NCBI RefSeq assembly: GCF_026571515.1
Contig: NW_026858822.1
Coordinates: 124,001 to 188,000, forward strand
Length of the DNA stretch: 64,000 nucleotides
From: Ruditapes philippinarum
Taxonomy: Eukaryota
Direction: 5' to 3'
Part shown: positions 9,469 to 29,108 of the stretch, piece by piece
Position numbering within the stretch: position 1 is the stretch's first letter
Layout of the letters: each line of letters begins with the position of its first letter
Notes under the pieces: model-generated
What the model was told of the DNA's origin: nothing
What the model saw: the letters and a program-made list of their open reading frames with translations, nothing else
The model's database searches: none
Position numbers and translations under genes: made by a program

Positions 9469-11353
9469 AAAGATTAATTTTTTATTTCTCCTAATTATGA
9501 TTTAAAAATCTGGACCAAAATGCCTTGTTTACATTGTCATTATATTAGATATTTTCGACCATGCGACCACATACATGCATCGAGGACATATTTGAAGGAA
9601 AGTGACCGTGCGACCACATACACGCATCACAAGATTCCCGTTCTCTTACGAGAAAGGAACAAAGAGTTGTCCGCCCTTTTATTAAAGGCAGACTGTAAAA
9701 ATGCCTTTGCCTTATGTTATTGATAAGGAGGCTAGTTTTCACAGATATGGCTTGAATTGGTTTATATATAACATTAGTAATGCAAAGCAAGCGGGTTTTC
9801 AGTTTACGTCTTTTTAAGTCCGCAATGAAATTTTAAAAAGATCATATATAACTTCTTGGAAAATTTTGAGTTTAAACTTTTTTCTACTTCTCATTATATG
9901 TATATAGCAGAATTATTATAATTTTGCAAAACATGAACGTTTCAAAAACGTTTTATATAAGTTAAATATTGGAGATATATTTCACACTGTTTTCACATAT
10001 TAACCTGGGGGCATTTTTGCCGATGTACTATCCAAGGACAATAACTTGAGCCTATGTTTACATAAAAATTAATAAAAGGTAAAGCAGACTGAAGCCTAAT
10101 AAATGAAACACAAAGTAAACGTCATATTTTCATGTGCCTTGATAGCGCAGTAAGCAGAGCGTCCTTGTCAGTGTTGTTTCATGCATTTAGATGCTCGTAT
10201 CATAGTTAGGTCCCATTACATTTGAGTGTTTTATGCGACGTCCTGTGAACGTTGCCTTTGCCTTGTTGATCTTTATTCTTGTTATTTTATGTATCTTTTT
10301 CTTATTTGACCACCTTTTTTCAAATAGTTTCAAATGCATGAGATAGAAAATTTTTGTACACAGGTTGATAAGCAGTTGTGCTAAGTTTGGGGAAAACGTC
10401 AAACATCAGGAAAAAGCATTATCAGAAATGTAAGAAATATAATGAAATGACGTGTATTATATATTGATAATTAATATTTCGTAATCGTAGTGTGTTTAAA
10501 ATTGATTGATTCTTAAAATGTTAAATAAGATTTTAAAAAATCACTTGAAATGTAGTTATTTTCTTAACAGTGGAACAAAAAATGAAATGAAATAAAAAAC
10601 ATAAAATAGAAATAGAAATTTATGAGAACCAAATACATGCATATTCAAATGATCATACAAAAGACAGACAAAGTAAAAAAAAAGGGAGAAAAACAACACC
10701 ACCGGCAACAACGAAGGGTTCAAACATATAAGTACAAATCATTAAAAGTTACTGTGTCGTTGATTTACCAAGTGAGCTTCTATACGACGGTATACAGTTT
10801 TTAGAATTAAACTGTATATAGTTGTTGTTAAATAATATGCAGAGTTACCCTTTATTGGAATATTCCAAGTACCGTTAAGTCACAGGACAATTAATATGGA
10901 CAATACACATTTAATTTCTATATTCGACTTATTCTACTTAAAAAAGAAAAGGTAATGTGATGGGCTGCAAGAAAAATATAGATTAAACTTGAGCAGCACG
11001 CAAATAAGACACCGGTAAGAATACATACATGTATTTGCAAGACTTTAGTCTTATCATTCCTGCTGAATTTGATCGTTACAAAAGCATGAAGTAGGCAGAA
11101 AAGTTGCGATCATGCAGTCACGCAGACCTTCATCCGTGTGACGTCAAATTCCCTATCAAAAGAGATACCTTATTTTCAGCTACATCTAGCCTTCATACCG
11201 TAATCTAACGCAAAACATACAATGCATACGTAGATACTTTATTTTTCTTTTTTTTCCTTTCTTTTTTATTCGTTTTTTTCTTCTTCAGAAAATAGCTGAA
11301 GATATACTCATGATACTAGTGATAATATTTAATACAGTGATACAATACTATCT

Positions 11354-11550
11354 TACGGAAGCCCATAAGTGCCATTTTGTCTTAGGACTTTTGTCTTATG
11401 ACTAATGACTTGTGTATTATGACTTTTGTCTTATGTATTATGACTTGACAAAAAAGCGGAAAAAGGGCAAGTTTCATCACATGCACCCTTCATGGACGTT
11501 GGAGGTAAATCTGATAGTGAAACAGAAGACGATTTGGTAAGTGTTAAATT
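11354..11550 (+). repeat. Left TIR, containing 7-bp subterminal units and a 45-nt ATG exon (11492-11536, [15 protein letters not shown]|gtaagt)
   Basis: Reverse complement of 28381-28578 with a few mismatches. Confidence 0.92.
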
Positions 11551-12679
11551 TAAAAAGTATGACAGTACTGTATTTCTCCTAACTTGAATAATTATCTCCC
11601 ATACAAGGTTAGGTTTCGAATATATGGGTCATCTCAGATGAAAAAATAGGTCACAGGGCACAACAATCGTATTAACTGTTAAAGTTTAAGTATCAAAATA
11701 TTTGCAAGACTGACACATTTTTAAAACATGTGTGAAACTTTATTCTGTATAAAATATAAATTATTTCTCCTTCAGGTAAATGCGAGTAGTAAACAATGCG
11801 AGTAGTAAACGTATTCATGCACTAGTTCAGAACATAGCAGGCCACTAAGAAGAAAAAAGACCCAGGAACATTGAAAAAGATTAACTTATGGAGATCCATT
11901 GATGGTAAACATGTTGGACATTCATCTTCTACCTGTGACTCTCTTTACAAAGGAAAATACAAGAAATTGATTTATGATTTATCAGACAAGTACAAAGGCA
12001 AATGTGCCGAATGATGATATTTTATCAAATTGCAGAGTACAGTAGGAGAACAAAAAGTAACAAAGAAGACTGCTTTGGTAAGAGTTAAATTGTTAAAAGA
12101 TTTACATAAATTAATTTTGTTTATGTCATGACAACTATAGTATATAGGATTAACTGTACAACTAGTTGCAACTTCTCCATGCATCTGTTTCAGTTTCAGT
12201 TCTTTTCCAAAACTGTAAGGCATTGGCCTAACAACTTGAAACTCTTATTCTTTTGGTGACTCTATTGAGTTATCTCCCTTTTAAACTTCTTTTTTAATTT
12301 TCAAATATAAAGGTTATTTGAGTGTTCAGTACCTGTATACGGTGCAATTTTGATTTAAGCAGTCATAGTCTTACTTATCAACCCGCCCGCTTATATCAAC
12401 AGACCGACGGTTTGTTGGCGAGGCTATGTTTTCCGTGATTGTGTATAAAATTTTCAGGCCATTTAATCAAACTCCGTCTTTGTTTAATCTTTTTTCTCCT
12501 AGCAACATTTATATGATTTAAAAAAAACAACAACAAAAACTACACACTGATAACTATGATGTTTGAATAATTATTGCAATTGACATTTTATACAGCAGTG
12601 TTTTTATAAATTATATATTTTGTCTGACATCTTATAAGTATGAATAAGAGCTTATATGTATACGTACTCTGTTTTCCAG

Positions 12680-13941
12680 ATATCACAAGTGAATATGTTG
12701 GCGTTCCATAGCTTTTGGTTTTGTCTTTGGATACAACAGGTTAACTCTGTATTAGGAGTGACACCTTCAAACATACCAGACACATCGACAGCAGGAAGTA
12801 CACGGCTTGAATTAGTGAAACACTATTTTTACTGTGGGTTTTCATATCCGGAAATTATTCTTTTGTTGTTTGTTATAAATAACATTAAAATATCGTTGCG
12901 ACAGCTTAATAGAGTACTTAAATGTAACAACTTACGACGTCGAACTGGATACACACCAGATCACATTGTTCTTGATTATATTTCCAAGGAAATTGAGACA
13001 AGTGGTCAGTGCATTGGTTATCGTTCGATGTGGAAACGCTTGACAAATGAACATAAATTAAGAGTTCCTAGAAATAAAGTTCTTTCATTTATGAAAACTA
13101 TTGATCCTGACGGAATTAATTTTCGGAAAGCCCACAGAATTAAAAGACGCAAGTACAGAATAAAGGGGCCAAATTATGTATGGCACGTAGACGGTTACGA
13201 TAAACTGAAACCATATGGCTTTTGTATACACGGTGCTATTGATGGTTACAGTAGAAGGATACTTTGGCTAGAAGTGTCACAAAGTAACAACAACCCTGCA
13301 GTCATCGCTATGTATTATCTTGAAGCGCTGAAGACGCTTCGGGTTGTTCCCCGAATTCTTCGTTGTGATAAGGGAACGGAAAATTCAACTCTGTCTTTGC
13401 TCCAACCGTTCTTCCGGTACAATGATACAGATAGTATATCGAGACTTAGAAGTTTTATATACGGAAAAACGTTTCAAATCAACGAATAGAGGCCTGGTGG
13501 GGAACTATGAGACGCCAAGGAATTCAATGGTGGATTTCCTTTTTCAAAGATTTAAAGGACAATCAAGAGTATGATGAATTAAATCCTTTACATGTTGAAT
13601 GCTTGAAATTCTCTTTTATGCACTTGATTCAGGCCGAGCTTGACAGAATAGCGGTTAATTGGAACTTACATTCCATACGTAAACAGAAATTCTGAGGTAC
13701 CAAATGGAAAACCCGATTTAATGTACTTCGTTCCGGAATTGTTTGGCGGACACAATTATGGAAAGATTGTAGATCAAAATGATGTTGTGAAATGTACGGC
13801 TTACGTAGGACAACATGCATTATAGAATTTCAAGATTTGGTAAAATTACTAAAGCCTGACATCCGCATTCCCAAGGATGTACAAGATGCTCTAGAACTAT
13901 ACAGGGAACTACTGGAACTTATTGATGAAGCCATGGAATAA
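12680..13941 (+). pseudogene. IS3EU-type DDE transposase (integrase core), frameshifted. Probable upstream exons at 11492-11536, 11776-11904 and 12036-12077
   Basis: Motifs GYRSMW, RRKYRIKGPNYVWHVDGYDKLKPYGFCIHGAIDGYSRRILWL and PRILRCDKGTEN. After a frameshift near 13470 it reads SNQRIEAWW...WNLHSIR, and after another near 13690 VPNGKPDLMYFVPE. Acceptor ttttccag at 12679 is in frame. Confidence 0.9.
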
Positions 13942-14059
13942 TTTCTCTCATATATGTGCTCTGAATAAATTCTCTTCAAGTATCAGATATTTAATATAAT
14001 TCATTAAGATCGTTTGCGGAACAAGTTCTTGCCAAGGTTTTTTTTAATCAAAACCCTAG

Positions 14060-14172
14060 AACCAACCAGTACTGGTGTCATATGAAGAAACATGGAGATG
14101 GCTCGAGTAGGACTCGAACCCATAGTCCTTAGGTTGAGGGGCAGACACATTAACCAAGAGGCCACCGCTCCT
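14060..14172 (-). mobile_element. tRNA-derived SINE fragment
   Basis: The minus strand reads ggagcggtggcctcttggttaa (A-box-like) and gggttcgagtcc (B box). Confidence 0.65.
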
Positions 14173-15204
14173 CTTTCCCCTTGTTTAAAAGAAATGGATT
14201 GTAGTACGAAACGTAATGTTGTGTAAGCTTGTTCCTCCGCAAAATGGGTTTTTATATGGAGTTAAATAAAGGAGTATGTAAAAATCATAAAGTAGAGCAA
14301 TTTATTATATCTTACAATAATTAAGTCATGCAATAAATTCAATTTTGAAAAAGAAACAAAACCAAATGCTATCAGATAGTATCAGATGTTAACTTTGAAT
14401 TGCTTTTGCGTAGTGGATTGGTAAATTCTGCGATCACACTTATGTGCCTTTGAACCAGAATCTTTTACTTATTTGAGGTCAATTCAAGGACATTAAAGTA
14501 ATACAAAGAAGAATGAAACACGAGGCTATTTGATCTGATAGCTATCTGATACAAGGGGGCTAAACTAGTTACATGCTTGTTCCCAAAATGTTGTTCTGAG
14601 ATGCCCACAATGTAACTTCCAAACATGCAGATTTTACAGGATATATGTCTTATAATATTGTTATATTGTTATATTATATAAATGTATATAATTGTCTATT
14701 ATATGATTTAAAATTCATACACAACATAAGAAGTAGTTATGTACATTAAAATAACATAAACTGATATCTATTCTGTTTCCCTTTTATAGGTTTTTCCATA
14801 GAACTTATTCAAACAACCCTTGAAACTTCACTGGTGGATATCAAAACATGAATATTTGTTACTAACACGAATCATTTTATCTTAAACTATGTCCATTTGT
14901 TTTATTTCCTTGCTTAGGTTTAAAGACTGACACTTTCAAAAAATATTGTTTTAAGGAAAAGAGCTCGCTTATATGAAATATAATCTGATAAACAAAATTA
15001 AATGGTTTTAACGAAATATATTGACAATTATTTAAGTCTTTAAGTAAAAAAATAAACAAGTGTTAACTTAAAACCAACTTTCTTTTCGGCATACAAACTT
15101 AAATATTTTGAAATCAGTCATAAGTTTTACTTAGATTTAAACAAATTGAAAATACTTATATCAAAGAAACAGAAATAATTATAGTTTTGAAAACAGCCTA
15201 ATAC

Positions 15205-16150
15205 AAAACAAGAACTATCACTAAATGTGATTAATACCCCCGCAAGACTGCTTCGGAAATGATGGAGTTATTAGTAATAGAATACCTTTTAAAAGAATTG
15301 AAATTGAGTTATGGTTGTGGGCAATTAAAGATAGTTGTGGTTCTTGTATGTTTCAGTTCCAGTCAATGTGGTTTAACATTGATGAAGTGTTATTGAATTA
15401 CCCTGTAATAAGTTCAGAAAGAGTTACGCTTCTTCAGCACTGCACTTCATCTCATTGCGCTTGACCATTGTATGAAGTTGCATTAAATTCTAAACATTAA
15501 TTTTAAGTTATGCATCGGACAAGGAAAAGGAATAAAGGGCAATAACTCTACAAATACTGAAGATGGAGTTATGGTTATTGTATACTGCACTTCCTTTCAT
15601 TGTGCTTGACCATTGTATAGAGTTGTATTGAATTCCAAACCATAGTTTTCAAGTTATGCACTGGACAAAAATTAACAAAGGGCATTGTATGAAGTTTTTT
15701 TGAATTCGAACCCGTGCTTTTAAAGTTATGCTTCGGACAAGGAAAGATATCAAAGGGCAAAAGCTCTGTAATTTGTCAAAATGGAGTTATGATTCTTGTG
15801 TACTGCACTTCCTCTTATTGTGCTTGACGATTGTATGAAATTGTATTGAATTACAACCAGTAGTTTTCAAGTTATGCTCCAGACAAGGAAAAGAAACAAA
15901 GGGCAATAACTCTGTAATTAGTCAAGATGGAGTTATGGTTCTTGAGTACTGTACTTCCTCTCAATTCGCTTGACCATTGTATGAGGTTATAAGGAATTCC
16001 AACCATGAGTCTTAAGGTTATGCTCCGGACAAGGAAAATGCAACGGACCGCTTGACCGACCGACCGACCAACCAACCAACCAACCAACCGACTGACCGAC
16101 CACCGGTTGACTCCTATATACCCCCCTAACTTCGTTTCGGGGGTATAAAA
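15205..16150 (-). mobile_element. Non-autonomous Helentron/HINE-like element with internal tandem repeats and a (CCGA/CCAA)n tract, nested in the IS3EU element
   Basis: Begins aacaag with a short hairpin. Repeats of gatggagttatggttcttgt...gaccattgtatgaag, microsatellite at 16050-16100, and an end hairpin tatacccccc...gggggtata followed by an A-run. Confidence 0.75.
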
Positions 16151-16269
16151 AGTTTTATTTAATGTAATATTAACCACTTTTGACGTCACTCTCAATATAT
16201 ATCAAACAATAATATTTCAGTTCCATTATATCACTTTTACTTATTTGCTACACCCGTTCATATCTTAGT

Positions 16270-19200
16270 TTATTTACTAAACTCTGTTGGGAATTCAGTC
16301 GCTACTGGTCTGCTATCGGGATCATAGTTCAGCCCCTTGGTTACAATGTCTACTATTCTGCTACAAATACAGTCCATTTGTACAAGTTTTGTAATGGCAT
16401 GTGGGACTTCTTTTTGACTCATAAATTCTTTAATTGTTTCAACAACTGATCTTTCATTTTCTTCTTCATCTTCCTCTTGTAATCCCCACATTGGACATTC
16501 ACTGAATAATTCTGCAAGAGTGCCTGCCATTCCCCAAACATCAGATTTTGTTGATGCAGGTCTATTACCAAGCAAAATTTCTGGTGCTTGAAAGATAAGG
16601 GTACCTGGTTGCATACCTGGTGCATAGGTGGTAGCAGAACTATTTATTGTTAACAATTTTGAAATCCCCAAGTCACATAATTTCACTACTTCTAAAGATT
16701 CTGATACAATGATGTTCTCTGGCTTTAAGTCTCGATGTAATATAATAGGAGAACTGTTGTGCAAGTAAGCAACAGCCTGTGATATCTTTTCAGCAATGTG
16801 GCACTTTTTTAGAAGGGGGATTATTTGGCATCGATCACCAAACAGTAGGTCATCTAAATTTGATCCTTTTATGTACTCAGACACAATGTGTAATGCATTA
16901 TTATATACCGAATACCCCATACACAGTATAATGTGTGGATGCCTTACTCTGCTGAGAACTTTTACTTCTCGTTCAAGAGCTTTCTGGACTAGTTTAATTC
17001 GCCTTATTTTTACAGTTTTTATTGCAACTGGAGTAAAAAGATAATGTGCCAAATGTACTGTTCCAAAAGAGCCTTCCCCAATTTTAGGTCCCATAAAAAA
17101 ACTATCATAAGGAATTTCTGGCACATTTACATCTGTTGAGAAATTAAGCGCGTGTATAGGATTATACTTGGCTGTACTTGAACGTTCTTTGAAATAGTCA
17201 CAGTTTGTCTGTTCACTCACATTCTCATTCATGACATGACTTTTTATTACTTCATTGTCTGTAATGGAATCATAACTAGGAGTTGATCGTTCAGTAACAG
17301 TAACAATATCAACTGTTTTGTCCTCCATTGATGGTTCAGTAACACTGTCAACTGTACTGTCCTCCATTGATGGTTCAGTAACACTGTCAACTGTACTGTC
17401 CTCCATTGATGGTTCAGTAACAGTGTCAACTGTTTTGTCCTCCATTGATGGTTCAGTAACAGTAGCAACTGTACTCTCCTCTATTGATGGTTCAGTAACA
17501 GTAACAGTATCAACTGTACTGTCCTCCATTGATGGTTCAGTTACATAAGCAGTATCAACTGTACTGTCATCCAGGGACTGAAGTCTTACTCGGTCAGTTA
17601 AAATCTCCTGAGTTGCATGACAAGTGTTTGTTGAAAGTTTTATTTTTTCTGCCAGCAAAGCTTGAGAGTCCACCCTTACAGCTGCACATTCATAAAGTGT
17701 ATCTTCATCTGATACCTTCACCAAGTATTCACCAGGATCAGTTACGGGGATTAAGCAAAGGTCAGGTCCACTTGCAAAGAGTTCGTTGTTTTTATACCAC
17801 TGAAAATATGCACCAGAATTATGTTCTTTATAAAGTACTCCAAGTATGATTTCCTTGTTTTCTTGCTTCTCAAAACCCACAATCTGGTCAGGTGTATGAA
17901 TTATTCCTTTTGCGTTTGATGTAGCTGTTGGATATTCAAAGTGGTTAGAACTCGGATCTGCTTGGCTCAAAATAGAGATCTTGTTGACTGTTATGCCTGT
18001 CACTTTGAAACTATTTTCCAGTGGATTATACCCATCTCTTTCTCTGTCAGGATCACTTACAATTGTGTCAAGAAAGCAGTCATCAATGGTTTGGCAGATT
18101 TTTTGTGAACATTCTGCTGTGTATGATGAGTTGCAAAGTTTAGTGTACTTTACACATATTTCACCAGGTGTTTGGTCATTTACTATCAATGATGTTAGAG
18201 GAACCGGAATGCTTTTATCATCTACATGCTGTCTAACTGGCTCTCTACCGTCAATCTCCTGTTTTTTAGATGTTCTCAAATATAAAAAGTACTGAGAGGA
18301 AAACACGCCGATAGACTTCAAGTATGTTTGCAAATTACATTCTTCCCCATTTGGCATGACAAATTTTGAGATTACTTCTCCGTTACATGTAGACAGGTTC
18401 ACTACCATATCTGTTAACTTTCCCATATCATTTTTTCCATCTGGAAAGAAAATGCTAGTTGCATAATTTATAACTGTCTGAACAGTTTGCTCTTCTTCTT
18501 TTTTAAATTCGTATATTCTTGTACCGCCTCCTCTCCGTGCGGTAACTTGTCTTAACTTCCCACGAGTTTCATGAAGCCATCCAAGGTGCAACTTATATAT
18601 GGCATGTCTACCAGTACCTCGCTGTTTCTGAAAGAAGAAATAATAAGCTATCTATGATAATTTATTGAAAATACACCAAGGGATATAGTTTTATATAGAA
18701 ATTTGATGAATCTTTCAACCATCATAACTGAATCTCATAGAAAACTTAAATGTATACGTCATTTAATAAAGCGCCCAAAAATATGTGTCACTCACATAAA
18801 AACTTGCTGTTTATTTCTTTCAAAAAAGTACATTATTTTACGCAATGGTCGTATTCATTGATTCGTTAAATTAATCTAGGTTTTGACAAAACCAAAACAC
18901 AGTTACCAGACTAAAATTTTAACCAAGTGATCTAGTATTTACCACTCATTTACCAGAACGTATTTTGACTTTTGAATTATGTCTTATGTATTTTGACTTT
19001 TGTATTATGTCTTATGTATTTTGACTTTTGTATTATGTCTTATGTATTTTGACTTTTGTATTATGTCTTATGTATTTTGACTTTTGTATTATGTCTTATG
19101 TATTTTGACTATTATATTATGTCTTATGTATTTTGACTTTTGTATTATGTCTTATGTATTTTGACTTTTGTATTTTGTATCATGACATATGTAATACGGC

Positions 19201-22200
19201 TTATGTATTGTCTATTGCGGGTTAAGAAGTATGCATCATTTGAATTATACAGATATGTAAGAAGTAAGAAGTATCGCAGCTTGCTCATCTATTACCCTAT
19301 CTCCTTAGTGATAATTTTACTTGAGAATACTAAATTTGACTGCTATTTGCATGTCGGTTCTGTGCCAAAATAATCATAAATGTTCAAACTGTTTTCTACA
19401 ACTGAATCTTAGTGCTTCGAATTATTTTGTTAATAGAATAAAAGAAGATTTTGCATGTAGGTTATTTACAGTGTTTATTTATATATTATGTAGTCAAACA
19501 TTGCACAAATGCTTTAGAAGAATGAAAAGTCAAACATTTGTTATTTGTCATTTTCAAGAAAACTTTATCGATTTGGTAGAACCATTTCATGTATCAGATC
19601 ATTCTATAAGTGATTTTACAATTCCACCTATTGATCATGTTTAGAAAAAAACAACAAAGAATTGGCTTCAAAATGTCATATTTTAAATTATGAAAAAAAT
19701 CCTTGTTTTCACCATAGATTCCTCAATATCAGATTATTAATTATCATTTATTGTACTCTTTGTATTTTCACATATTAATATACATTTATAGTAAAGTTTC
19801 ATTATATAAAACATTCAATTTGAAGAGGAAAAAAGTAATATTTTGAATGATTACATACTACAAGCTGTCTTATTTTTCATATTAATTACATATCATTGCA
19901 TGTATATATAGTGATATCAAAATACAACTGATTCAGGTACTCTCATATTTCATTCCTCCACAAAATATGATAAACAAAATCAACAAGTTAAGGCAGCGTT
20001 CAATGAACGCAAAAAAGACAATAGTGTGAAACTTCTTATTTATTTATATTTGAATAAGTTATGCTGAATTAATGCAATTGAATCAACCATTTCACTTAAC
20101 TTGATTTTTATATTAATTAGAATTATATGGCACATAAACCGACAAGCACGTAAACTGACAGAAGAACAAAGTTGTACATGCACAAAGTATCATAGTAGAT
20201 GACTTTAAGCATTAAAGATGCATGCCTCCAGATGAGTCAAAATATTTTTTTTAAAAACTCAAACTTAAGATAAATATGCTAAGATTTTAAGAAAAGTAAA
20301 GAGATTCAAGAATTAAGTTATAATTTACATGTTGGGATAAATCACTGGTTTTGCAGTATGCATCACCATAATTCTCCTAACGCGTAACGAAAGGGCTATA
20401 TTTGCCAATTTAACCACCTTTAAAAATTTACGATTGTAAGTAGATTATTACTTTGTTCATAACAATATTTTCCTTTTCATAATATTCATGAGAATTTTCA
20501 TGAATGTTTGAAGTATGCTGCTTTAAAAGTTAAAGAGTTATTCAAATCCTTAATTATTATATATTAAATCATGACTCAGATATAGATGTACATATATGAA
20601 GACTGTTTTTCCTAAACTAAAATGATTATTTTTGTTGCAAGTTTAAGGCATGGGGCATGTTCTTCACACTTCTTTAGGAGGACCCAGCAACTACCAAAGC
20701 AAAATTTTTTTGGTAAAATAGATAAATACAGAATTCCTAAAGAAAGCCCAACACGGCAAAATTGAAAATGTTGCAGGCTCGGTTTGATTGAGCCTGTTCA
20801 TGGACGGTACTGGAAAGTGCAAGTTACCGTCCACGCCCCCTAGCACCGGCTTAAGCAGAATTCAACATTTAAACATGAAATAGTAAAATTTTGAATTTAG
20901 AAACATCCGCAGATGTGTTCATACGGCGGTTATCATGGAACCTTCAATGTGACACTTCCGTGCCATTCCATGAAAAGCGGCGTATGGTCCCCAAGTAATA
21001 AAAAGCGTGTGCCCTAAACGAGAAAACAATGTGCGGAACTAAATAAAATGGAATTTTGAAAGGGGATCAGAGGTTATGAAGCCTACATATCACAGATAAG
21101 ACGTCAAAAGACAAATTTAAAACATCATTATTCAGTATCTAGGGATTTGTACTTATAAATCATAAACCTGTTTCTTGAAAAAATACTTGTATTTTCCATT
21201 GTAAACAGAGTAACGTAACAGACTGAATGTCTCATTTTTACCTTTTTTGGATTTTCCATCATAAGCTGTTTCTTCTTCTTTTTTTGCCCTGCTATATTTT
21301 TAACTAGCTCCTTAATTCGTTTTCTTCTCACATTTTTCCTGTAGGAGAAATAATATATATTTCATACAGAATATTGCAAGAATCAAGTTTCACAACTGTA
21401 TCAAAATGTGTCTGTCTTGCAAGAATCTTGTTACTTAATTAATCTAACAAATAATATTCATTCATAAATCAGATGACCAATAATGGAATAAGACCTAGAA
21501 AACCAATCAAAACAATTTTCCTGGCCAATCTTCATAAAATTTGCGGTGAAAATGTAAATTCTAGAGAGTTAAGATTTATAGCGCACTGTAAACTACTTTT
21601 TCTCACGAAATGAAATGGTCCATATAAGGACTCGTCCGAGAAATATTTGGGACAAACATCCTGACCGTGTTCAACAGAGGCAAATGAGTGACCATCGGTG
21701 TATTAATGTGGATGGACATTCATAAAACCTTACTAAGCCACTGTTTGACGGATGTGTTCTAAAAAAAAAGAACCTGATATTAAGACAACTTTGCAATTAG
21801 AATCGAGGTGAAAAGTAAAACTATAAAAGAGCAAGATGGTTTTAAAATGTACGTCAGTGTTGGTATACTTTTCTGGCCCTTCGTGATCATTGATGCCAGC
21901 AGTATTAAGTGTGGATAATTGAGTACCGCTCAAGACGGTGCAAGGGGGCGTGAGGGATGTTGCACTTATTCATTATCCCTCATGAACAGACTCAATCAAA
22001 CTGAGTCTGCAATTTTCGCGTAATTTTGTTGTGATTAATGCTTCAGGGGGATCACTTTGTTTCCATTTTATTCTTTTCAGTGATACACATGCCAGTGAAG
22101 AGCTTGGAAGTTGAATTTCTTTTATTAACAAAACAATATTTTGAAATTTGGAATAATTTTTTCCTTTTTGTAAATATTTACAAAGGTACTTTGTGTTTAT

Positions 22201-25200
22201 CTTTCCATAAATCTTCTTCAAATGTTATGTTTCTCAAAATCAAAACTGACATTCCTCGCTTTTGTTATCCAATTCAGTTCTAGAGAACAATAATCCTGCT
22301 GGTCAGTTTTTTTTAATTGATTTTGTTATTGTAACTGCTTTAAAAACACTCATTAAAGGCAGTTTTAAATTAAAGTGTAGTATTCTTATAAGTACTCCAT
22401 TATAACATTTATACATGTCTCATATCAATTGTTATTAGCCTTTGACACAGAAAGTGTTACTTCGATATGATTTTGAAATAGATATTGTTATTTTATTCTT
22501 GATAAATTATCAGTAATAATTCCTTGAATCATTTAGTGGTCTCCTGAATAAACTTGTTACACATGAATAGATTATTCCAAGTGTTGGACCTATCAGTTCA
22601 TACCGGGTCAACATTGCATCATTTTATATCTCACCTTACAGTTAATTAGCCAGCAACTTGAAAGATGTAGATAAAAGTGATTTATATTTTCCCAGTTGTT
22701 CGCATAGTTTCTATACAGACCATAGTACAGAACAAAATATACAAACTGAATTAAAGATAAAACTCTAGAAATTTAAATTATGAATTTATAGATATTTTTG
22801 AAATTTTATGTGCTGTAAAAAATTCATTGAGTGAAATATGATCAGACCTATAAATATTCTTTAATGTTATTGCTGATTCTCAAAATACACATCACCTTAC
22901 AACACATTACGTGTTATATTATGCTAACTGGCTTTAATGACGCTGTATCTGCCAAGTGGGATTAAGGTCTTAGACCCATCATTGACATATCTTAGAACCT
23001 ATGGAATGTTAATATTTATTGAATCTATGCTACATGCCTGACATGTTTGCAAATTTTCATTGACTTTTACCATCTAATAAGAAAATTATGACCAAATGTA
23101 TGTTTTCGGCCTTTCCCTTTCTGGATCGTGTAAAATTTGCCAGAGTTGAACTATAGAAATGAGCTTATTTTCAACAGATATTGCAAAAACATTAGAAATT
23201 TGGTACCAAATTGTAGTACATTTATTATTTTATCAAAATAAAATATCATTTGAGTAACAGTATTTGCAATAAAACTTATGAAAACAAAAATATGTTACCA
23301 TTGTCACTCGGAAAATGGCCAAATCGTGAAAATGTAGACTTGTACTTCAATTTTTCTAAGAATTTTCTATAACCTACTTACAAGGTCCAGCCAATTGAAA
23401 TACATAGAAATTATCTAACATACCATATGAGAAAAATAAGAAAAGAAAGACATCATTTACCATGTTGTTTGTAAAATATACAGCATTATATTTGACAACC
23501 CCATAAACTGATTTTGGCCATTTTTCATCAACAGTACACATTTCTTTATGTAAAATTCAAAATACATTTTGAAAAGTATCAAACATTCTCAAAATGACCT
23601 AATTATCATGAAGCTATATTCTAAGCATTCTATAAATATGTTAATTACTGTATATACTGAGTAAATGTAAAAATTGTCAACTTGAAATGGATCTCAACGT
23701 ATTGTTCTGACTTTAGAAAGAGCACGAGCAGTGTACTAAACTGTATTATTCCCAAAGTATCCCCTCTGGAGCAACACAGAAGTATATCATATAAAAATGC
23801 TATGTCATACACTAATTCCTTGAAAAATACTGTGCAAGGGCAGGGATAACAGTTTCTAATGTTCTTTTAGTATTAGTTACTCGTGGCTGACCGTCACAGT
23901 TCTTCATCACGAAAATGTTCCGAAGACCATCTTCGCCTTGGCGCTTAAAGATGCACCTTAGATGTTGTAGGTTCAAGCCGGACGCAGCAATATTCTCGGC
24001 TGTAGTTAACTTACACACACTATTATAAATCAATACTCTAAGTGACGGCAAATTCTTTGCTTTTTCCCGACTGCACAACTGGGAATTGTACACAGATTTT
24101 GTTGAAAATGTGTGTGGCAGCAGATCAACAGATAATATGTCCAAGTGGTGAATAAGTTTACCAAGAATCGAGACATCTTCTGAAGCATTATGAGCACAGT
24201 ATGAAGCTCCCAATAGATCCTTTGCAAGGTCTTCCTGTTTGTAAGACTTCCTGTTTGGGTATGCTTTTCTAAATATAGACAGTGAATCCGCACATCCAGC
24301 AACACACTTTACACATTCTGTCCCTCAATCCTACATTGTCACATGCCGTCAACAAAACAGGAAAGTCAAATCTTCTGCCATTATGCGCAACCAATACAAC
24401 ATTCTGAAATTTTTCTAACCAATCACAATATGATTTCAAAGCTTCATATATGGAATAAGCCTCTACATTAGTTCCATTGTACTGCATCTTGTGATCCACC
24501 ATTCTTAGGCCGGTCACTTCTTGTGCCTTGTCAGATATGGGCAATGTAGGTAGAACATACATATTGAAAGCTTTCCCACTTTTAGGTTCTGTGGCAGCAA
24601 CCTGGGTAATATGTGGGATCTGGCCATCGTGTACTGAAACAAACAACACAATTATTTATAAATAAATAAACAATTTTGAGCTGTTTTATGTGCTCTTATA
24701 AATAATCTGAGATCTTATTCTAATTCAGCTTGTTCCGAATAAGGATAAACCATTCCTGATATATTGCATATTTTTTTACAATTATATTTTAAGAGACGAC
24801 TAATCACTCAACCTAATATCGAAGGACGATAACCTAAAATGAAAGCAACTGTGTTACAGTTTTCACATGATATATATCAACAAATTCGCAATACAGGTCT
24901 ACTTACTAAGGCCAGTTGTCTCCAGGTCAAAAGCAATGTATGTAGGCTGTCCTGTTGGCAGCACTATAGGTTTGAAGTCACCTCGAGGGACTGGATCTGG
25001 CAGCTTTTGGATGTCAGCATCATCTGAATGCCCAATCTCTGAAATACAAATATATAGATTAGAATATAACCTATAAAAGTAAACAAAAGGTAATTTGCAA
25101 ACTTTGTTTTAGTAATGTTTATATTTACAAGAAATGATGTTCGAAGAAGGAAAAGAAGAAGGAAAACACCAGTACCTGCAAGACTGACAGTATTTTGTCA

Positions 25201-28200
25201 AAATACATGTATATGAGCCGTGTCATGACAAAACCAACATAATGGGTTTGCAACCAGCATGGATCCAGACCAGCCCATGCTGTTCGCTATCAGTTTCTCT
25301 ACTTGTAATAGAGTTGGAAAGCAAACAGCATGGATCCTGATCAGACTGCATGGATGTGCAGGCTGATCTGGATCCATGCTGGTCGCAAACCCATTATGTT
25401 GGTTTTGTCGTGACACGGCTCATATGTTTGTTCTGTAAGTAAAAAAAACAACAGCACAAATCACTTTACCTACCTGACTGATAGGACATGCCTTCAAGAG
25501 CTTCTTGAGCACCTTGTGTTATTGACCGCTCTTGTTTTAGTTGAAGTCGCCGCCGCTTAGTCGATGGCAGTGCCGATCTTTCCTGGACACGCTTCCTATG
25601 CTTCTGGCATTTATCTGCATATCTGAGGCTGTGGACACCAGGGGAAAGACCTGCCTCGGAGTGTACCTGAAAGCAGTAATCAGATTATTTAGCACACTTT
25701 AAAATGAAATATTCAGTCAAACATGGATATTGTAAGAAAAGAATTTTCTTGATCTATATATAAACCCAGGCAAAAATAATTCAGATAAAATGGGAACTAT
25801 TCATAACTCTTTACTATTGTTGAGGAAAACTGCATTATGATTTTTGTAAAAGTAACACCATTATTCAATAAAGTTTGCTTTTCACACCAACAATTTATAC
25901 ATTCCATCAAGGTGCATAGTGGTCTATAAGCAATATTTTTCTTCATTATCACTCAACATTTTCAACAGCAATTGCTTATATCTTTATATAAAAGTCATCT
26001 TGTGGATTGTTTGTCTCATAAAACTGACTGGCATACAGGTCCTATCTGCACAAAGCATAACAGAAAATTTAATGACAATCTTTCCAAAGTTCTAGATAAT
26101 AGAGTATTTACCTTATGATCATCACCTGTCAACATCTTGTTCCTTGAATAATAACAGTGCTGAACTGGAACAGCTGAACAAAAACAACAAACTTCAATAA
26201 ACAATTAACATCAATCAACCGTCAAACAAACATTCCAACATTATTTTGGCAATACATCCAACTAAATACACTTCCATGAAAATTATTTTTTTTTTTTTCA
26301 AAGGCTTCAACAATCTGAAAGAGACTGTTTTCTCTTTCTCAAATATAAATCAATGCTTATTACTTTATGAATGTTCTTTATTTTTCGAGTGATGGTTGAA
26401 GTTTGCCAAAATTATGCATGAAAAATTCACAAATATATGTAATACTGAAAACAATTAATACCAAGGAAACAGGGTCTCCAGAACTAGTATACCACAAATG
26501 AAAGGTTGTTATGACTTTCTTAATTGTTGTTCAAAACTATGTCTGTACTGGTCTAACATTTGTAAATAAAATAACAAGCAAACTAAACAGAACAAACTTA
26601 AACAGTAACAAGATATGTACCTTTGAAATGTAGTGACGCCCTTCATTGATGAATGCTGCTGTGGCCTTCACTCTAAAATCCAAAGATTCTGAATTCCCAT
26701 AATGAAGGGACTTTGGAGCCCTCATGGTGACCTCTCTGTTGGCGTGCTCGCACTGCTGACTCGAACCTAGGTCTGCGAGCTGGGGAGCCTTCATCACAAC
26801 TGGTTCAAACAGTTTTTCTAGCTGAGATCTAAGGTGGTCGTCCTTAAGCGGTCCTTTGTAGGGCAGGCTTCTGTGTGAGTATTTAACACTGCGGTCACGC
26901 TTGTACCCACACCATCGAGGCTGGCACATTGTGTGGTCTGCGAATTGATGAGGTACTAAAGCTTTCAGATTTTCTTCTAGTCCCTTTGGATCACCTTGAT
27001 TCTTTGCTAGAATATACTTCACACATTTCTGAATGTGTAAGATCACTAACTTACTGAGCTTTGTGCTTTTGTCCGCCTGAAGAGCATATAGCTTCTTTCC
27101 AATGTTTTTCACTATATGATTTCTGTCAAATTTCTTTTTCAAGCTAATGTTTGATTTGGATTTCAGACGAGCTATCATGGTGTTATCTCCATCGCCTTCA
27201 ATCACTTCCACAGGGGTTCCGTCCTTGTGTAGCTCACATACACCCCGCTCACCCGATACACTTTCCATAAGCCTGGCACTTCCTGTGTGATCATGAACAC
27301 AACGATGATTTCGTACTGCCTCTGAAGGTCTATAAGACCACAGAATTTGCAACACTTTAAACCAGAAAGAAGAACATCAAACTCAACGATTCTACGACCT
27401 GTCTTCCAGCCCATCCTTGACACATTTTTAGGCAATTTCGGCTGGCATTCACAGTCTTGTCCATTACACAAATGTGCTCCAACATAATTGTGATCTTCTA
27501 TAACATTCGACTGCTTCTTTAATCGCCGAGAATTCACAACTTTCTTGTAACGGCCTGTTTTATCGCGGACTTTCATTTTGACATTTACGGTGAAGGACGT
27601 TTCATGTAATCTCTAAACAAAGTGGTGGATTTCAAACATCCGATAATTTCAACGAATTGTTGGGAATTTGGATATTATATTGTTAATATACCAAACAAAT
27701 AGCAGTTATTTAATTTTTGTTTACAATACTTTTTACGAAAACGCAATTTGTAACGTTTATATTTTTTAGAGAATAACTAAGCCGACCTAAGCCGAGTAAT
27801 CCCGAAGTACCTCCGTATCCGTTACGAGGAAGGGCGGAGTTAGGCGAAATTTCACGATCTAATGATGGGTCTAAGACCTTAAGCCGTCAATTGTATCATA
27901 ATCCATGCTTTTTTAGGGGAAATGAACCTTATTCCACTTTTACACTCATGAATGAAGTTTATCTATCTTTCAAATTTGATTTCTATGACAGGCATTATGT
28001 CTGTCTGCTAACATAAAGAAACAGGTGGCCATAGTAAATCATGATGTTTGCAAACCTCAAAGCAGTAAAATCACTTATTAATTAATCTTGGATATTTTTA
28101 TTTATTTCCTTACTATTTCAACTCAAAGAAAGTCAAAATATATTGTTCAAGTGATTGCACAGGTTAATGAACAAATATGGTGAGATAACACTGTGAGGAG

Positions 28201-28439
28201 TGCTTTGCATTAACACCTGTTGTCTAAATTTTGTACTCTTGATGAAATCTTTGTAGTTTTAACTGATACATGAATCGGAGCAAGTATGTGCTATACATAA
28301 ATAGCATAAATAGTGTTCGCTATAAACAAACAATAATACATTGAGAAATAAGCTTGTATAAGGGAGCCTAACTGTTTTCAATTTCAACACTTACCAAATT
28401 GTCTTCTGTTTCACTATCAGATTTACCTCCGTCAGCCAT
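16270..28439 (-). CDS. Transposon-borne Ser/Thr (TKL-like) protein kinase. Predicted exons 28439-28395, 21338-21242 and 18627-16270
   Basis: The 2358-nt last exon is open and has GEGSFG, VAIK, the alphaC Glu, [19 protein letters not shown] and the subdomain XI Arg. Acceptor tttcag at 18628 extends the ORF ([19 protein letters not shown]). Exon 2 is 97 nt, one base too long to keep frame with exon 1, but has in-frame ATGs at 21262 and 21259. Confidence 0.85.
17290..17575 (-). repeat. Coding 39-bp (13-aa) tandem repeat [13 protein letters not shown], about 6-7 copies
   Basis: tccattgatggttcagtaac recurs in frame within the kinase ORF. Confidence 0.95.
18961..19190 (+). repeat. 28-bp tandem array (tattttgacttttgtattatgtcttatg), about 7-8 copies
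   Basis: Direct periodicity. Built from the same 7-bp words as the TIR subterminal region. Confidence 0.9.
20216..20522. mobile_element. Kolobok-like MITE (TTAA TSD, AG..CT ends); same family as 51388-51738
   Basis: ttaa|agatgcatgcctccaga ... gtatgctgct|ttaa. The interior aligns by eye with the copy at 51388. Confidence 0.75.
23812..27576 (-). pseudogene. Kolobok-type DDE transposase fused to a DEDDh (DnaQ/PML-like) 3'-5' exonuclease. Exons 27576-26621, 25666-25474, 25038-24907 and 24633-23812
   Basis: Transposase motifs GRRIVE..CxxC, [15 protein letters not shown], [24 protein letters not shown] and GLSPG..KRRR..EGMSYQS. These splice in phase to FDLETTGL (ExoI), [14 protein letters not shown] (ExoII) and AHNASEDV (ExoIII). 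Frameshifts lie near 27335 and 24305. Confidence 0.87.
25215..25421. mobile_element. Palindromic MITE with GAG..CTC ends and 4-bp TSD ATAT (Sola-like), internally deleted copy
   Basis: atat|gagccgtgtcatgacaaaaccaacat ... gtgacacggctc|atat, located in an intron of the Kolobok gene. Confidence 0.88.
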
Positions 28440-28578
28440 AATGGGCGCATGTGATGAAACTTGCCTTTTTGCCGCCTTTTTTGTCAAGTCATAATACATA
28501 AGACAAAAGTCATAATACATAAGTTATTAGTCATAAGACAAAAGTCCTAAGACAAAATGGCACTTATGGGCTTCCGTA
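28381..28578 (-). repeat. Right TIR, containing a 45-nt ATG exon (28439-28395, [15 protein letters not shown]|gtaagt)
   Basis: Reverse complement of 11354-11550. Confidence 0.92.
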
Positions 28579-29108
28579 CTATCTAGATCTGTCATAAGCT
28601 TTATCTATATCTATTCTCTTCCTACGCAGTGACCCCGTTGATCAGTAAAATCTGCAAAGGGAGGTAATCACTGTGAGGAGTTTGAAGATATCTGGAATTT
28701 TATCGTGACAAAATATGGTAATTGATTTAAATCTACTATAACCTCTTGTCTGCAGGAATATATAGGTTTGCAGACCTTTTGGAGTCTCTTCGAGTAGATA
28801 ATGAAGACGAAAAAAAAGATATAAACTTTACTCAATATAGATTCATTATAAGACTTAGTCATTTGTAAAACGGAAATATTTGGTCTGCTACTACTATTTG
28901 TGACTATTTATTTTGTGTTTGAAGGTTAGTAAGATACTTTGATAATTAATCTAAACACTATTCAAATCGTTCCGAACTTTTGGTGTTATACATATGAAAT
29001 TTGACAAGGCTTTTCATTACATGTAAGCGCCATTGCCTATTAATGTTTATTTCTTAAACTGTCTATTGTCAACATGACAGACAAAGAACAGAAACAAGAT
29101 AACGTACC

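Follow-up and report, generated by a model that had tools for sequence, protein, structure and literature searches.

Positions 11354-28578 of a 64,000-nucleotide stretch of DNA from the clam Ruditapes philippinarum (NCBI RefSeq assembly GCF_026571515.1, contig NW_026858822.1, positions 124,001 to 188,000 of the forward strand; hereafter 'the window') are a decayed 17.2-kb copy of a 12.3-13.7-kb DNA transposon of the IS3EU/GingerRoot type. The element has two convergent genes: an integrase (transposase) gene at the left and an accessory gene, predicted to encode a protein kinase, at the right. Each of its terminal inverted repeats (TIRs) contains what may be read as a short first exon, and an earlier reading of the window from its letters alone (hereafter 'the original prediction') had taken these two exons to be one N-terminal exon shared by both gene products. 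Here, we describe the locus and argue for a different account, namely that the right exon codes for the start of the kinase, whereas the left exon would be a grafted leader of the integrase gene that bears an upstream open reading frame (uORF). For this account as a whole we estimate a probability of about 0.7.

Element, ends and copies

The assignment to IS3EU/GingerRoot is made by transposase type, the length of the target-site duplication (TSD), and the termini. Published marks of the superfamily are TA..TA termini, a 6-bp TSD, and an rve-type transposase, and the termini of fungal IS3EU elements read TAYGG..CCRTA (PMC10045372, PMC12730594). The true termini of the clam element are 11354 and 28578, with CTATCT on either side. 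Family copies were compared as six full copies (the window and five others of 12.3-13.7 kb) and 20 short paired relatives (1.2-7.4 kb). All 26 paired copies have TACGGAAG...CTTCCGTA ends (TACGG..CCGTA termini), and 24 have a perfect 6-bp TSD; the terminal 35-mer occurs at least 94 times, 47 per strand, in the 1.4-Gb genome. The transposase is an rve-type DDE enzyme (PF24764 rva_4 at E=8e-37, plus rve and HTH_21) without the N-terminal HHCC zinc finger, as is the rule for IS3EU. The NCBI model P0001, in which the catalytic residues are D172, D231, and E272, contains only 2 His and 3 Cys in its first 95 residues and no HHCC pattern. Additionally, the NCBI annotation for Ruditapes philippinarum holds an integrase 100% identical to a family copy.

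Two other classes were considered and rejected. Polintons/Mavericks likewise combine a 6-bp TSD with an rve integrase; they are ruled out by the lack of polymerase, capsid, and ATPase open reading frames (ORFs) and by the IS3EU-type termini. Nor does the element belong to MuDR/Mutator: that superfamily has a MULE transposase and an 8-10-bp TSD, against an rve-type enzyme and a 6-bp TSD in the clam element itself.

The short relatives have two different ends, designated A-type (kinase-side) and B-type (integrase-side). With a slash marking exon borders, the features on which the argument turns are as follows:

11348-11353, no strand: left TSD CTATCT, identical to 28579-28584
11354-11556, plus strand: left TIR, A-type 'L' variant, beginning TACGG, with 14/21-nt subterminal repeats at 11375-11446
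11492-11536, plus strand: left exon 1, with ATG at 11492-11494, a 45-nt frame, and donor GTAAGT at 11537
11776-11904, plus strand: left exon 2, 129 nt, its last three bases ATG, followed by donor GTAAAC
12032-12110, plus strand: apparent inner remnant of an older B-type TIR, with donor-like TTTG/GTAAGA at 12078/12079
12680-13941, plus strand: integrase exon 3, with HTH_21 and an rve/rva_4 DDE core (Pfam)
16270-18627, minus strand: accessory-gene exon 3, 785 codons and the stop at 16270-16272
21242-21338, minus strand: accessory-gene exon 2, 97 nt in the window, 96 nt in canonical form
28395-28439, minus strand: right exon 1, with ATG at 28439-28437, a 45-nt frame, and GTAAGT from 28394 downwards
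28375-28578, minus strand: right TIR, A-type 'R' variant, with subterminal repeats at 28486-28557
28579-28584, no strand: right TSD CTATCT

The TIR pair measures 204 nt at 92.6% identity, with 98% over the outer 103 nt. The window copy is dead: its kinase exon 2 carries a frameshift, its integrase has more than one, and it has taken up both a 4.9-kb nested TTAA element and a smaller insert of 0.4 kb.

The right-hand exon and the predicted kinase gene

Re-reading the sequence confirms that both TIRs carry an ATG, a 45-nt open frame, and GTAAGT. TIR identity does fade just after the donor, the left and right arms being identical at 0.42 in the 48 nt past the donor block, and the acceptors proposed at 11776, 12680, 21338, and 18627 fit canonical AG sites. 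Since the two exons are arms of one repeat, their co-occurrence does not amount to two independent events and chance is not the question; what matters is whether either one serves as an exon. Two convergent spliced genes that start at the element ends, as originally proposed, are supported by the comparison of copies and relatives. The shared N-terminal exon survives in part: it would be a real coding exon for the right (kinase) gene, but not for the integrase.

Sequence comparison indicates that the coding part of the accessory gene really does begin with the exon in the right TIR. The start codon of this exon lies 139 nt from the element terminus, and its 15 codons followed by GTAAGT are intact, at 45 nt, in all six full copies. 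Among aligned A-type ends, which span several subfamilies, the ATG is retained almost throughout, and the exon occurs only in lengths of 45 and 48 nt, all in frame (a 3-nt indel). Frame continuity into the remainder of the gene was judged from per-exon lengths and translations, exons being searched one at a time. Exon 2 has a CAG acceptor and ends in AAG/GTAAAA; it is 96 nt long and in phase 0 (32 residues) in C12346 and C11450, and each of the other four full copies has its own 1-2-nt indel in it, that of the window being an extra A in the run 21333-21337 (A5 versus A4), which shifts the frame. Exon 3 begins on a codon boundary (window position 18627) and is intact, among the six copies, only in the window, the other five being shortened. 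In the majority state, the accessory frame comprises 15, 32, and 785 codons in a single frame.

Homologous proteins bear out the downstream part of this structure. P0248 and P0159 share the N-terminal module of the accessory product in an all-against-all profile search, and P0159 also has the kinase domain. Their N-termini (MADKEYSEEERGERIKAVIENI... and MDDTKEK...ERMERVQAVISEI..., respectively) have a MAD/MDD start and an acidic stretch, followed by an RIK..V..I helix. The canonical exon 2 peptide aligns to P0248 residues 8-40 (BLASTP E=4e-4), and the junction of exons 2 and 3 is collinear with the homologues. A homologue search with the 773-aa frame returned distant kinases only, and one with its 309-aa N-terminal part returned no match; a representative search yielded only fragments (P0158, 359 aa, from Ruditapes philippinarum; P0160; and P0188).

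Three parts can be told apart in the exon 3 product: a putative beta-grasp module at the N-terminus, a set of acidic repeats of 13 aa, and the protein kinase domain. The last matches Pkinase (PF00069) at E=5.4e-45 (Pfam) and has the catalytic motifs, including APE, so that the product is a predicted Pkinase-family kinase. For the module (~120 aa), the fold model has a pLDDT of 81.7, and the top Foldseek matches are RA, ULD, RAWUL, UBL, and PB1, all of them weak (best E 4.7e-3, TM 0.3-0.5). The acidic units, encoded by ~7 copies of a 39-nt repeat at 17298-17573 on the minus strand, lie between module and kinase domain; the homologue P0159 has a different repeat at this position. Module matches occur at 83 or more places in the genome, among them several sets of nearly identical frames of 271 aa and, on C12824, an open frame of 1076 aa; many more module-bearing elements or genes are therefore to be expected. 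As for the CK2-type sites claimed for the exon 1 peptide, the S/T-x-x-D/E pattern does occur there, but it is only a pattern.

A second ATG, out of frame, stands 11 nt upstream of the exon 1 ATG (28450-28448 on the minus strand; 11481-11483 at the left end). It would open a short overlapping uORF in canonical copies and is absent from other A-type subfamilies. As a candidate kinase start (frame MRPLW...), the ATG at 28450 was rejected: its frame ran through exon 2 only by way of the window's private extra A, and its absence from the other subfamilies further rules it out.

The remaining features of the element lie between the two genes or in the kinase introns:

15396-16105, no strand: spacer between the 3' ends, a ~146-bp satellite-like array followed by (GACC)n
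18960-19209, no strand: 28-bp tandem array in kinase intron 2, 7.8 copies with 96% matches
20719-21117, no strand: window-only 0.4-kb insertion in kinase intron 2, absent from the five other full copies
22966-27878, no strand: nested 4.9-kb transposon in kinase intron 1, in the window copy only, with TTAA on both sides

The ~146-bp array (~4 units, 73-81% identity) is found in other copies too. The 28-bp array resembles the TIR subterminal repeats (75-80% similarity), and short relatives keep it beside their A-type end. In the comparison with the other five full copies, the two insertions (~0.4 kb and ~4.9 kb) are private to the window. The nested element has TIRs of 18-25 nt (GGTCTTAGACCCATCATT...), and its minus-strand ORFs match PF20700 (Mutator-like transposase) and a PML_C/Exuperantia-type DEDDh exonuclease. 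These two ORFs (23812-27576) were dismissed as genes of the family, lying as they do inside a TTAA-flanked insertion that the five other copies lack. Within the nested element, 25211-25425 contains two 65-nt inverted repeats, 95% complementary and separated by 85 nt, that resemble a small foldback or MITE.

The left end and the proposed integrase leader

At the left end, a 239-nt intron 1 separates exon 1 from exon 2, the donor of which lies at 11904/11905 (ATG/GTAAAC) and not at 12036, where it had originally been placed. Left exon 2 and its flanks are 66% identical to the reverse complement of 21118-21456, the kinase exon 2 region, and by this likeness the exon appears to be a decayed inverted paralogue of kinase exon 2. 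It varies from 129 to 132 nt among copies. In none of the six full copies is any of its three frames free of stops, which contradicts the proposal of an acidic tag common to integrase and kinase. Read through exon 2, the exon 1 frame ends in VNASSKQCE-stop in five of the six copies, that is, as a 24-codon uORF; in C4027 it runs for 48 codons.

Annotated integrases agree with this picture. NCBI models at three loci (P0308, P0001, and P0309) begin M/ISQVNMLAF. ISQ represents the first codons after the acceptor 12679/12680, and the sole ATG directly before a GT in 11354-12679 is that at 11902-11904; therefore, the annotated integrase coding sequence starts with the last three bases of exon 2. P0308, the window's own model (270 aa), ends exactly at the window's first frameshift stop (13487-13489), beyond which the frame shifts further near 13690 and near 13800; an intact integrase frame (416 codons) is found only in C8985. 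The models for isoform X2 and P0311 begin at the internal MLAF. Integrase homologues from other species have their N-terminus at the exon 3 position and lack an acidic extension, and an MDVGGK start occurs in none of the members of the 90% cluster. The left exon would thus be no integrase N-terminus and is best read as an uORF-bearing leader copy, untranslated as far as the integrase is concerned. As a caution for annotation, identical ATG exons in both TIRs need not mean identical protein N-termini. The integrases of this clade (P0001-P0003 and P0008; window 12680-12760) start with a hydrophobic, signal-peptide-like stretch, MLAFHSFWFCLWIQQVNSVLG, which is odd for a nuclear enzyme and has equivalents in other species.

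The original prediction had also raised the possibility of double-stranded RNA from convergent transcription. The stops of the two genes are 2.3 kb apart, each has an AATAAA within ~25 nt downstream (13964, plus strand; 16274, minus strand), and the shared 5' exons are same-sense in the two mRNAs. With separate stops and AATAAA signals, double-stranded RNA would need read-through, and the anatomy does not favour the proposal.

Why the left TIR holds a copy of a kinase exon becomes understandable from the short relatives. The outer part of the window's left end (11354-12031) is 92-95% identical to the kinase-side end of these relatives; beyond the TIR it is only 66% identical to the window's own right arm. 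Inward of the A-type end, the relatives have the 28-bp array and then a kinase exon 3 remnant, an order also seen in the window's right half. For window 12032-12110, in turn, the match is to the inner portion of the B-type end, in an alignment with 12 such ends from short relatives. Given the A-type match on one side and the B-type remnant on the other, the left end of the family looks like a composite, in which ~680 bp of an A-type end from a sister lineage sit on the inner remnant of the integrase-side TIR. The grafted piece includes the TIR, exon 1, intron 1, exon 2, and ~130 nt past exon 2, and replaced the outer ~150 bp of the original B-type TIR. The left TIR would thus carry a kinase exon copy because the left end of the family was rebuilt, a clear case, if so, of an end replacement that rewires the 5' leader of a transposase gene.

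B-type ends are ~76% identical overall to the window TIRs, and the identity is unevenly spread. Between A- and B-type ends it is 0.92 over the terminal 60 nt, 0.38 in the exon 1 region, 0.75-0.78 in the 20 nt around the donor, and ~0.5 in the intron after the donor. B-type ends have GCG in place of the ATG, and length there is not bound to multiples of three; they keep the donor TTTGGTAAGTGTTGAA. On the left ends of the family itself, the GTAAGT donor has survived in each of the six full copies and in almost every aligned L-type end. On this comparison, the donor is an island of conservation, kept even in B-type TIRs without the ATG. The expected conservation of the exon across copies is accordingly divided: the ATG and frame are kept only on kinase-side ends, but the donor is kept on both end types beyond general TIR identity.

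Relatives, rival explanations and known systems

Metagenome contigs were scanned with the integrase alignment, which gave 80 loci. At four of these the element is complete, bounded by TACGG(N2-3)CCCA(Y)AA termini and a perfect 6-bp TSD: L084 (2.9 kb, no second gene), L110 (9.4 kb), L112 (5.1 kb), and L135 (6.0 kb). A convergent second gene that ends in a HECT domain is present in L110, L112, and L116, and in L110 and L116 this gene also holds the N-terminal module of the clam accessory gene; L061 has a convergent kinase gene. The second gene of L110 starts 241 nt from the right terminus and opens with MVDEGKLE/GTAAGT, and those of L112 and L135 start at ~391 nt and ~355 nt, respectively, both with a zinc-ribbon exon. 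The transposase in other IS3EU lineages starts 170-350 nt from the terminus. Taken together, two convergent genes from the inner TIR edges seem to be a layout of the whole lineage and not a cargo picked up recently, as judged from these contigs.

Two of the metagenomic loci have conspicuous ends. Both ends of L084 (L084:296-3180) repeat a promoter-like block (AGAACRCTGTACTG...GCGGGMTCATA), followed by ATGGCG, and the left ATGGCG, 168 nt in from the terminus, is where the transposase begins; a start codon common to both TIRs is thus found again in a distant lineage. In L116 (L116:1-283), ~13 tandem 21-bp units, each with the palindrome TTGCGATCGCAA, resemble phased binding sites.

How such ends might work can be sketched. 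A mobile gene with its ATG 139 nt from the terminus must bring its own promoter along, and each TIR may have an inward promoter within its outer ~140 bp, as in maize MuDR. The 14/21-nt subterminal repeats are putative transposase-binding sites. From the right end, exon 1 would be spliced in phase to the 96-nt exon 2 and then to the 785-codon exon 3; at the left end, the uORF would lower integrase translation. The two genes, sharing promoter and leader, would be co-regulated.

Three other explanations were weighed against this account. That both TIR exons are translated, so that integrase and kinase share an acidic tag with CK2 sites, draws on the agreement of the two exons in ATG, 45-nt length, phase 0, and GTAAGT; moreover, left exon 1 ends and exon 3 starts on a codon boundary, and a form that skips exon 2 would be in frame. 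It is nevertheless very improbable. With exon 2 included, the frame stops at 24 codons in five of the six copies and at 48 in C4027; the isoforms of the NCBI 90% cluster start with M/ISQ or MLAF, none with MDVGGK; the integrase homologues of other species have no such N-terminus; and the integrase-side TIRs of relatives have no ATG at all. We consider it unlikely, though worth keeping in view, that left exon 1 (and maybe exon 2) is a silent relic, with integrase transcripts that start further inward (e.g. near 12032-12078 or in intron 1) and with only the right TIR acting as promoter and first exon. The MLAF start of X2 and P0311 would suit a 5' exon without an ATG, such as one that ends at the B-type remnant donor at 12078, and the length of left exon 2 is free to vary (129-132 nt). 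However, the donor of exon 2 at 11904 is required by three NCBI models; the CAG/G acceptor of that exon persists, which implies an upstream exon; the left GTAAGT is as constant as described above; and other IS3EU lineages likewise start their transposase 170-350 nt from the terminus. The last explanation, that the ATG, frame, and donor in the TIR are incidental, the TIR being only a binding end and the kinase starting at an ATGATG in exon 2 or from a promoter in intron 1, strikes us as barely credible. Exon 2 does contain an in-frame ATGATG, exon 1 alone finds no significant protein match, and the TIR is conserved at the DNA level without synonymous variation. Yet exons 1 and 2 are multiples of three and stay open in the one frame that leads on into exon 3; no length variant of exon 1 breaks the frame; P0248 starts with MAD and an acidic stretch before the exon 2 motif; a relative as distant as L110 opens its second gene with MVDEGKLE/GTAAGT at the same place; and the donor is an island of conservation.

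The account that we prefer, with a right exon that codes for the kinase start and a grafted left leader, has points against it as well. The whole accessory gene is intact in none of the six full copies, which is why its frame continuity is inferred from the majority state. Splicing of exon 1 to exon 2 at either end, the transcription start site, and the TIR promoter are likewise all predictions from sequence. Exon 1, taken alone, is too short to give a significant alignment to the homologues, and the protein collections contain no full-length kinase model of the clam family. Skipping of exon 2 at the left end would, hypothetically, join exon 1 to exon 3 in phase and give a tagged integrase isoform. 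Finally, the upstream ATG 11 nt before that of exon 1, if transcribed, complicates the choice of start codon.

A broader reading is offered tentatively, as one that we find somewhat harder to accept than to doubt: the TIRs of animal IS3EU elements may be obligate three-in-one structures (transposase-binding end, inward promoter, and first exon with donor), from which the transposase and a module-bearing effector (kinase or HECT) are always driven and which are swapped as promoter-exon cassettes. The swap in the clam element would have created a uORF leader that couples the integrase to the promoter of the effector.

IS3EU/GingerRoot is among the least studied superfamilies of eukaryotic transposons. 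The clam element shares with its published members (PMC6839031; Kojima, PMC10045372) an rve-type DDE transposase without HHCC, TA..TA termini, a 6-bp TSD, and 100-200-bp TIRs. By contrast, in the published descriptions consulted here, no spliced pair of convergent genes with starts inside the TIRs is reported for those members, nor, among animals, a protein kinase gene of the conventional kind. Fungal TET+ IS3EU elements (PMC12730594) resemble the clam element in that a kinase gene lies opposite in orientation to the transposase; theirs is an alpha-kinase beside a TET/JBP gene, whereas the clam kinase is of the PF00069 type and stands behind a putative ubiquitin-like module, and relatives have HECT in place of the kinase. 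From a second gene that is conserved at the opposite end (putative ubiquitin-like module plus kinase or HECT), it would seem that such elements come with a signalling or ubiquitin effector of their own, in parallel with the oppositely oriented alpha-kinase of fungal IS3EU.

The closest working analogue is maize MuDR, which the clam element may work like without being a member of its group. MuDR likewise has two convergent genes (mudrA and mudrB) and TIRs of ~200 bp; these ~215-bp TIRs hold a transposase-binding site, the promoters, and the start sites of mudrA and mudrB, and antisense RNA arises only by failure of termination between the genes (PMC3440606). It differs in being of the Mutator superfamily, with a 9-bp TSD, and promoter activity in the clam element is inferred only. 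In the clam element, unlike in MuDR, one TIR would also hold a start codon, 15 codons, and a splice donor. This combination within a single TIR is, on the sequence comparison, the first of two unusual traits of the element; coding, splicing, promoter, and transposase-binding constraints would overlap on the same 200 bp, which would explain why the TIRs are conserved well beyond the terminal binding sites. The other unusual trait is the apparent graft at the opposite end of a duplicate of this exon, which would act there as a uORF leader. For the graft, too, the nearest parallel comes from Mutator elements: in the portion of that study drawn on here (PMC10401008), lineages exchange TIRs by recombination, much as one end of the clam element appears to have been replaced from a related lineage, and in both cases TIRs and transposase differ in history. 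Unlike the exchanges described in that portion, the graft in the clam element would have brought along an exon and intron of an accessory gene, now the leader of the integrase.

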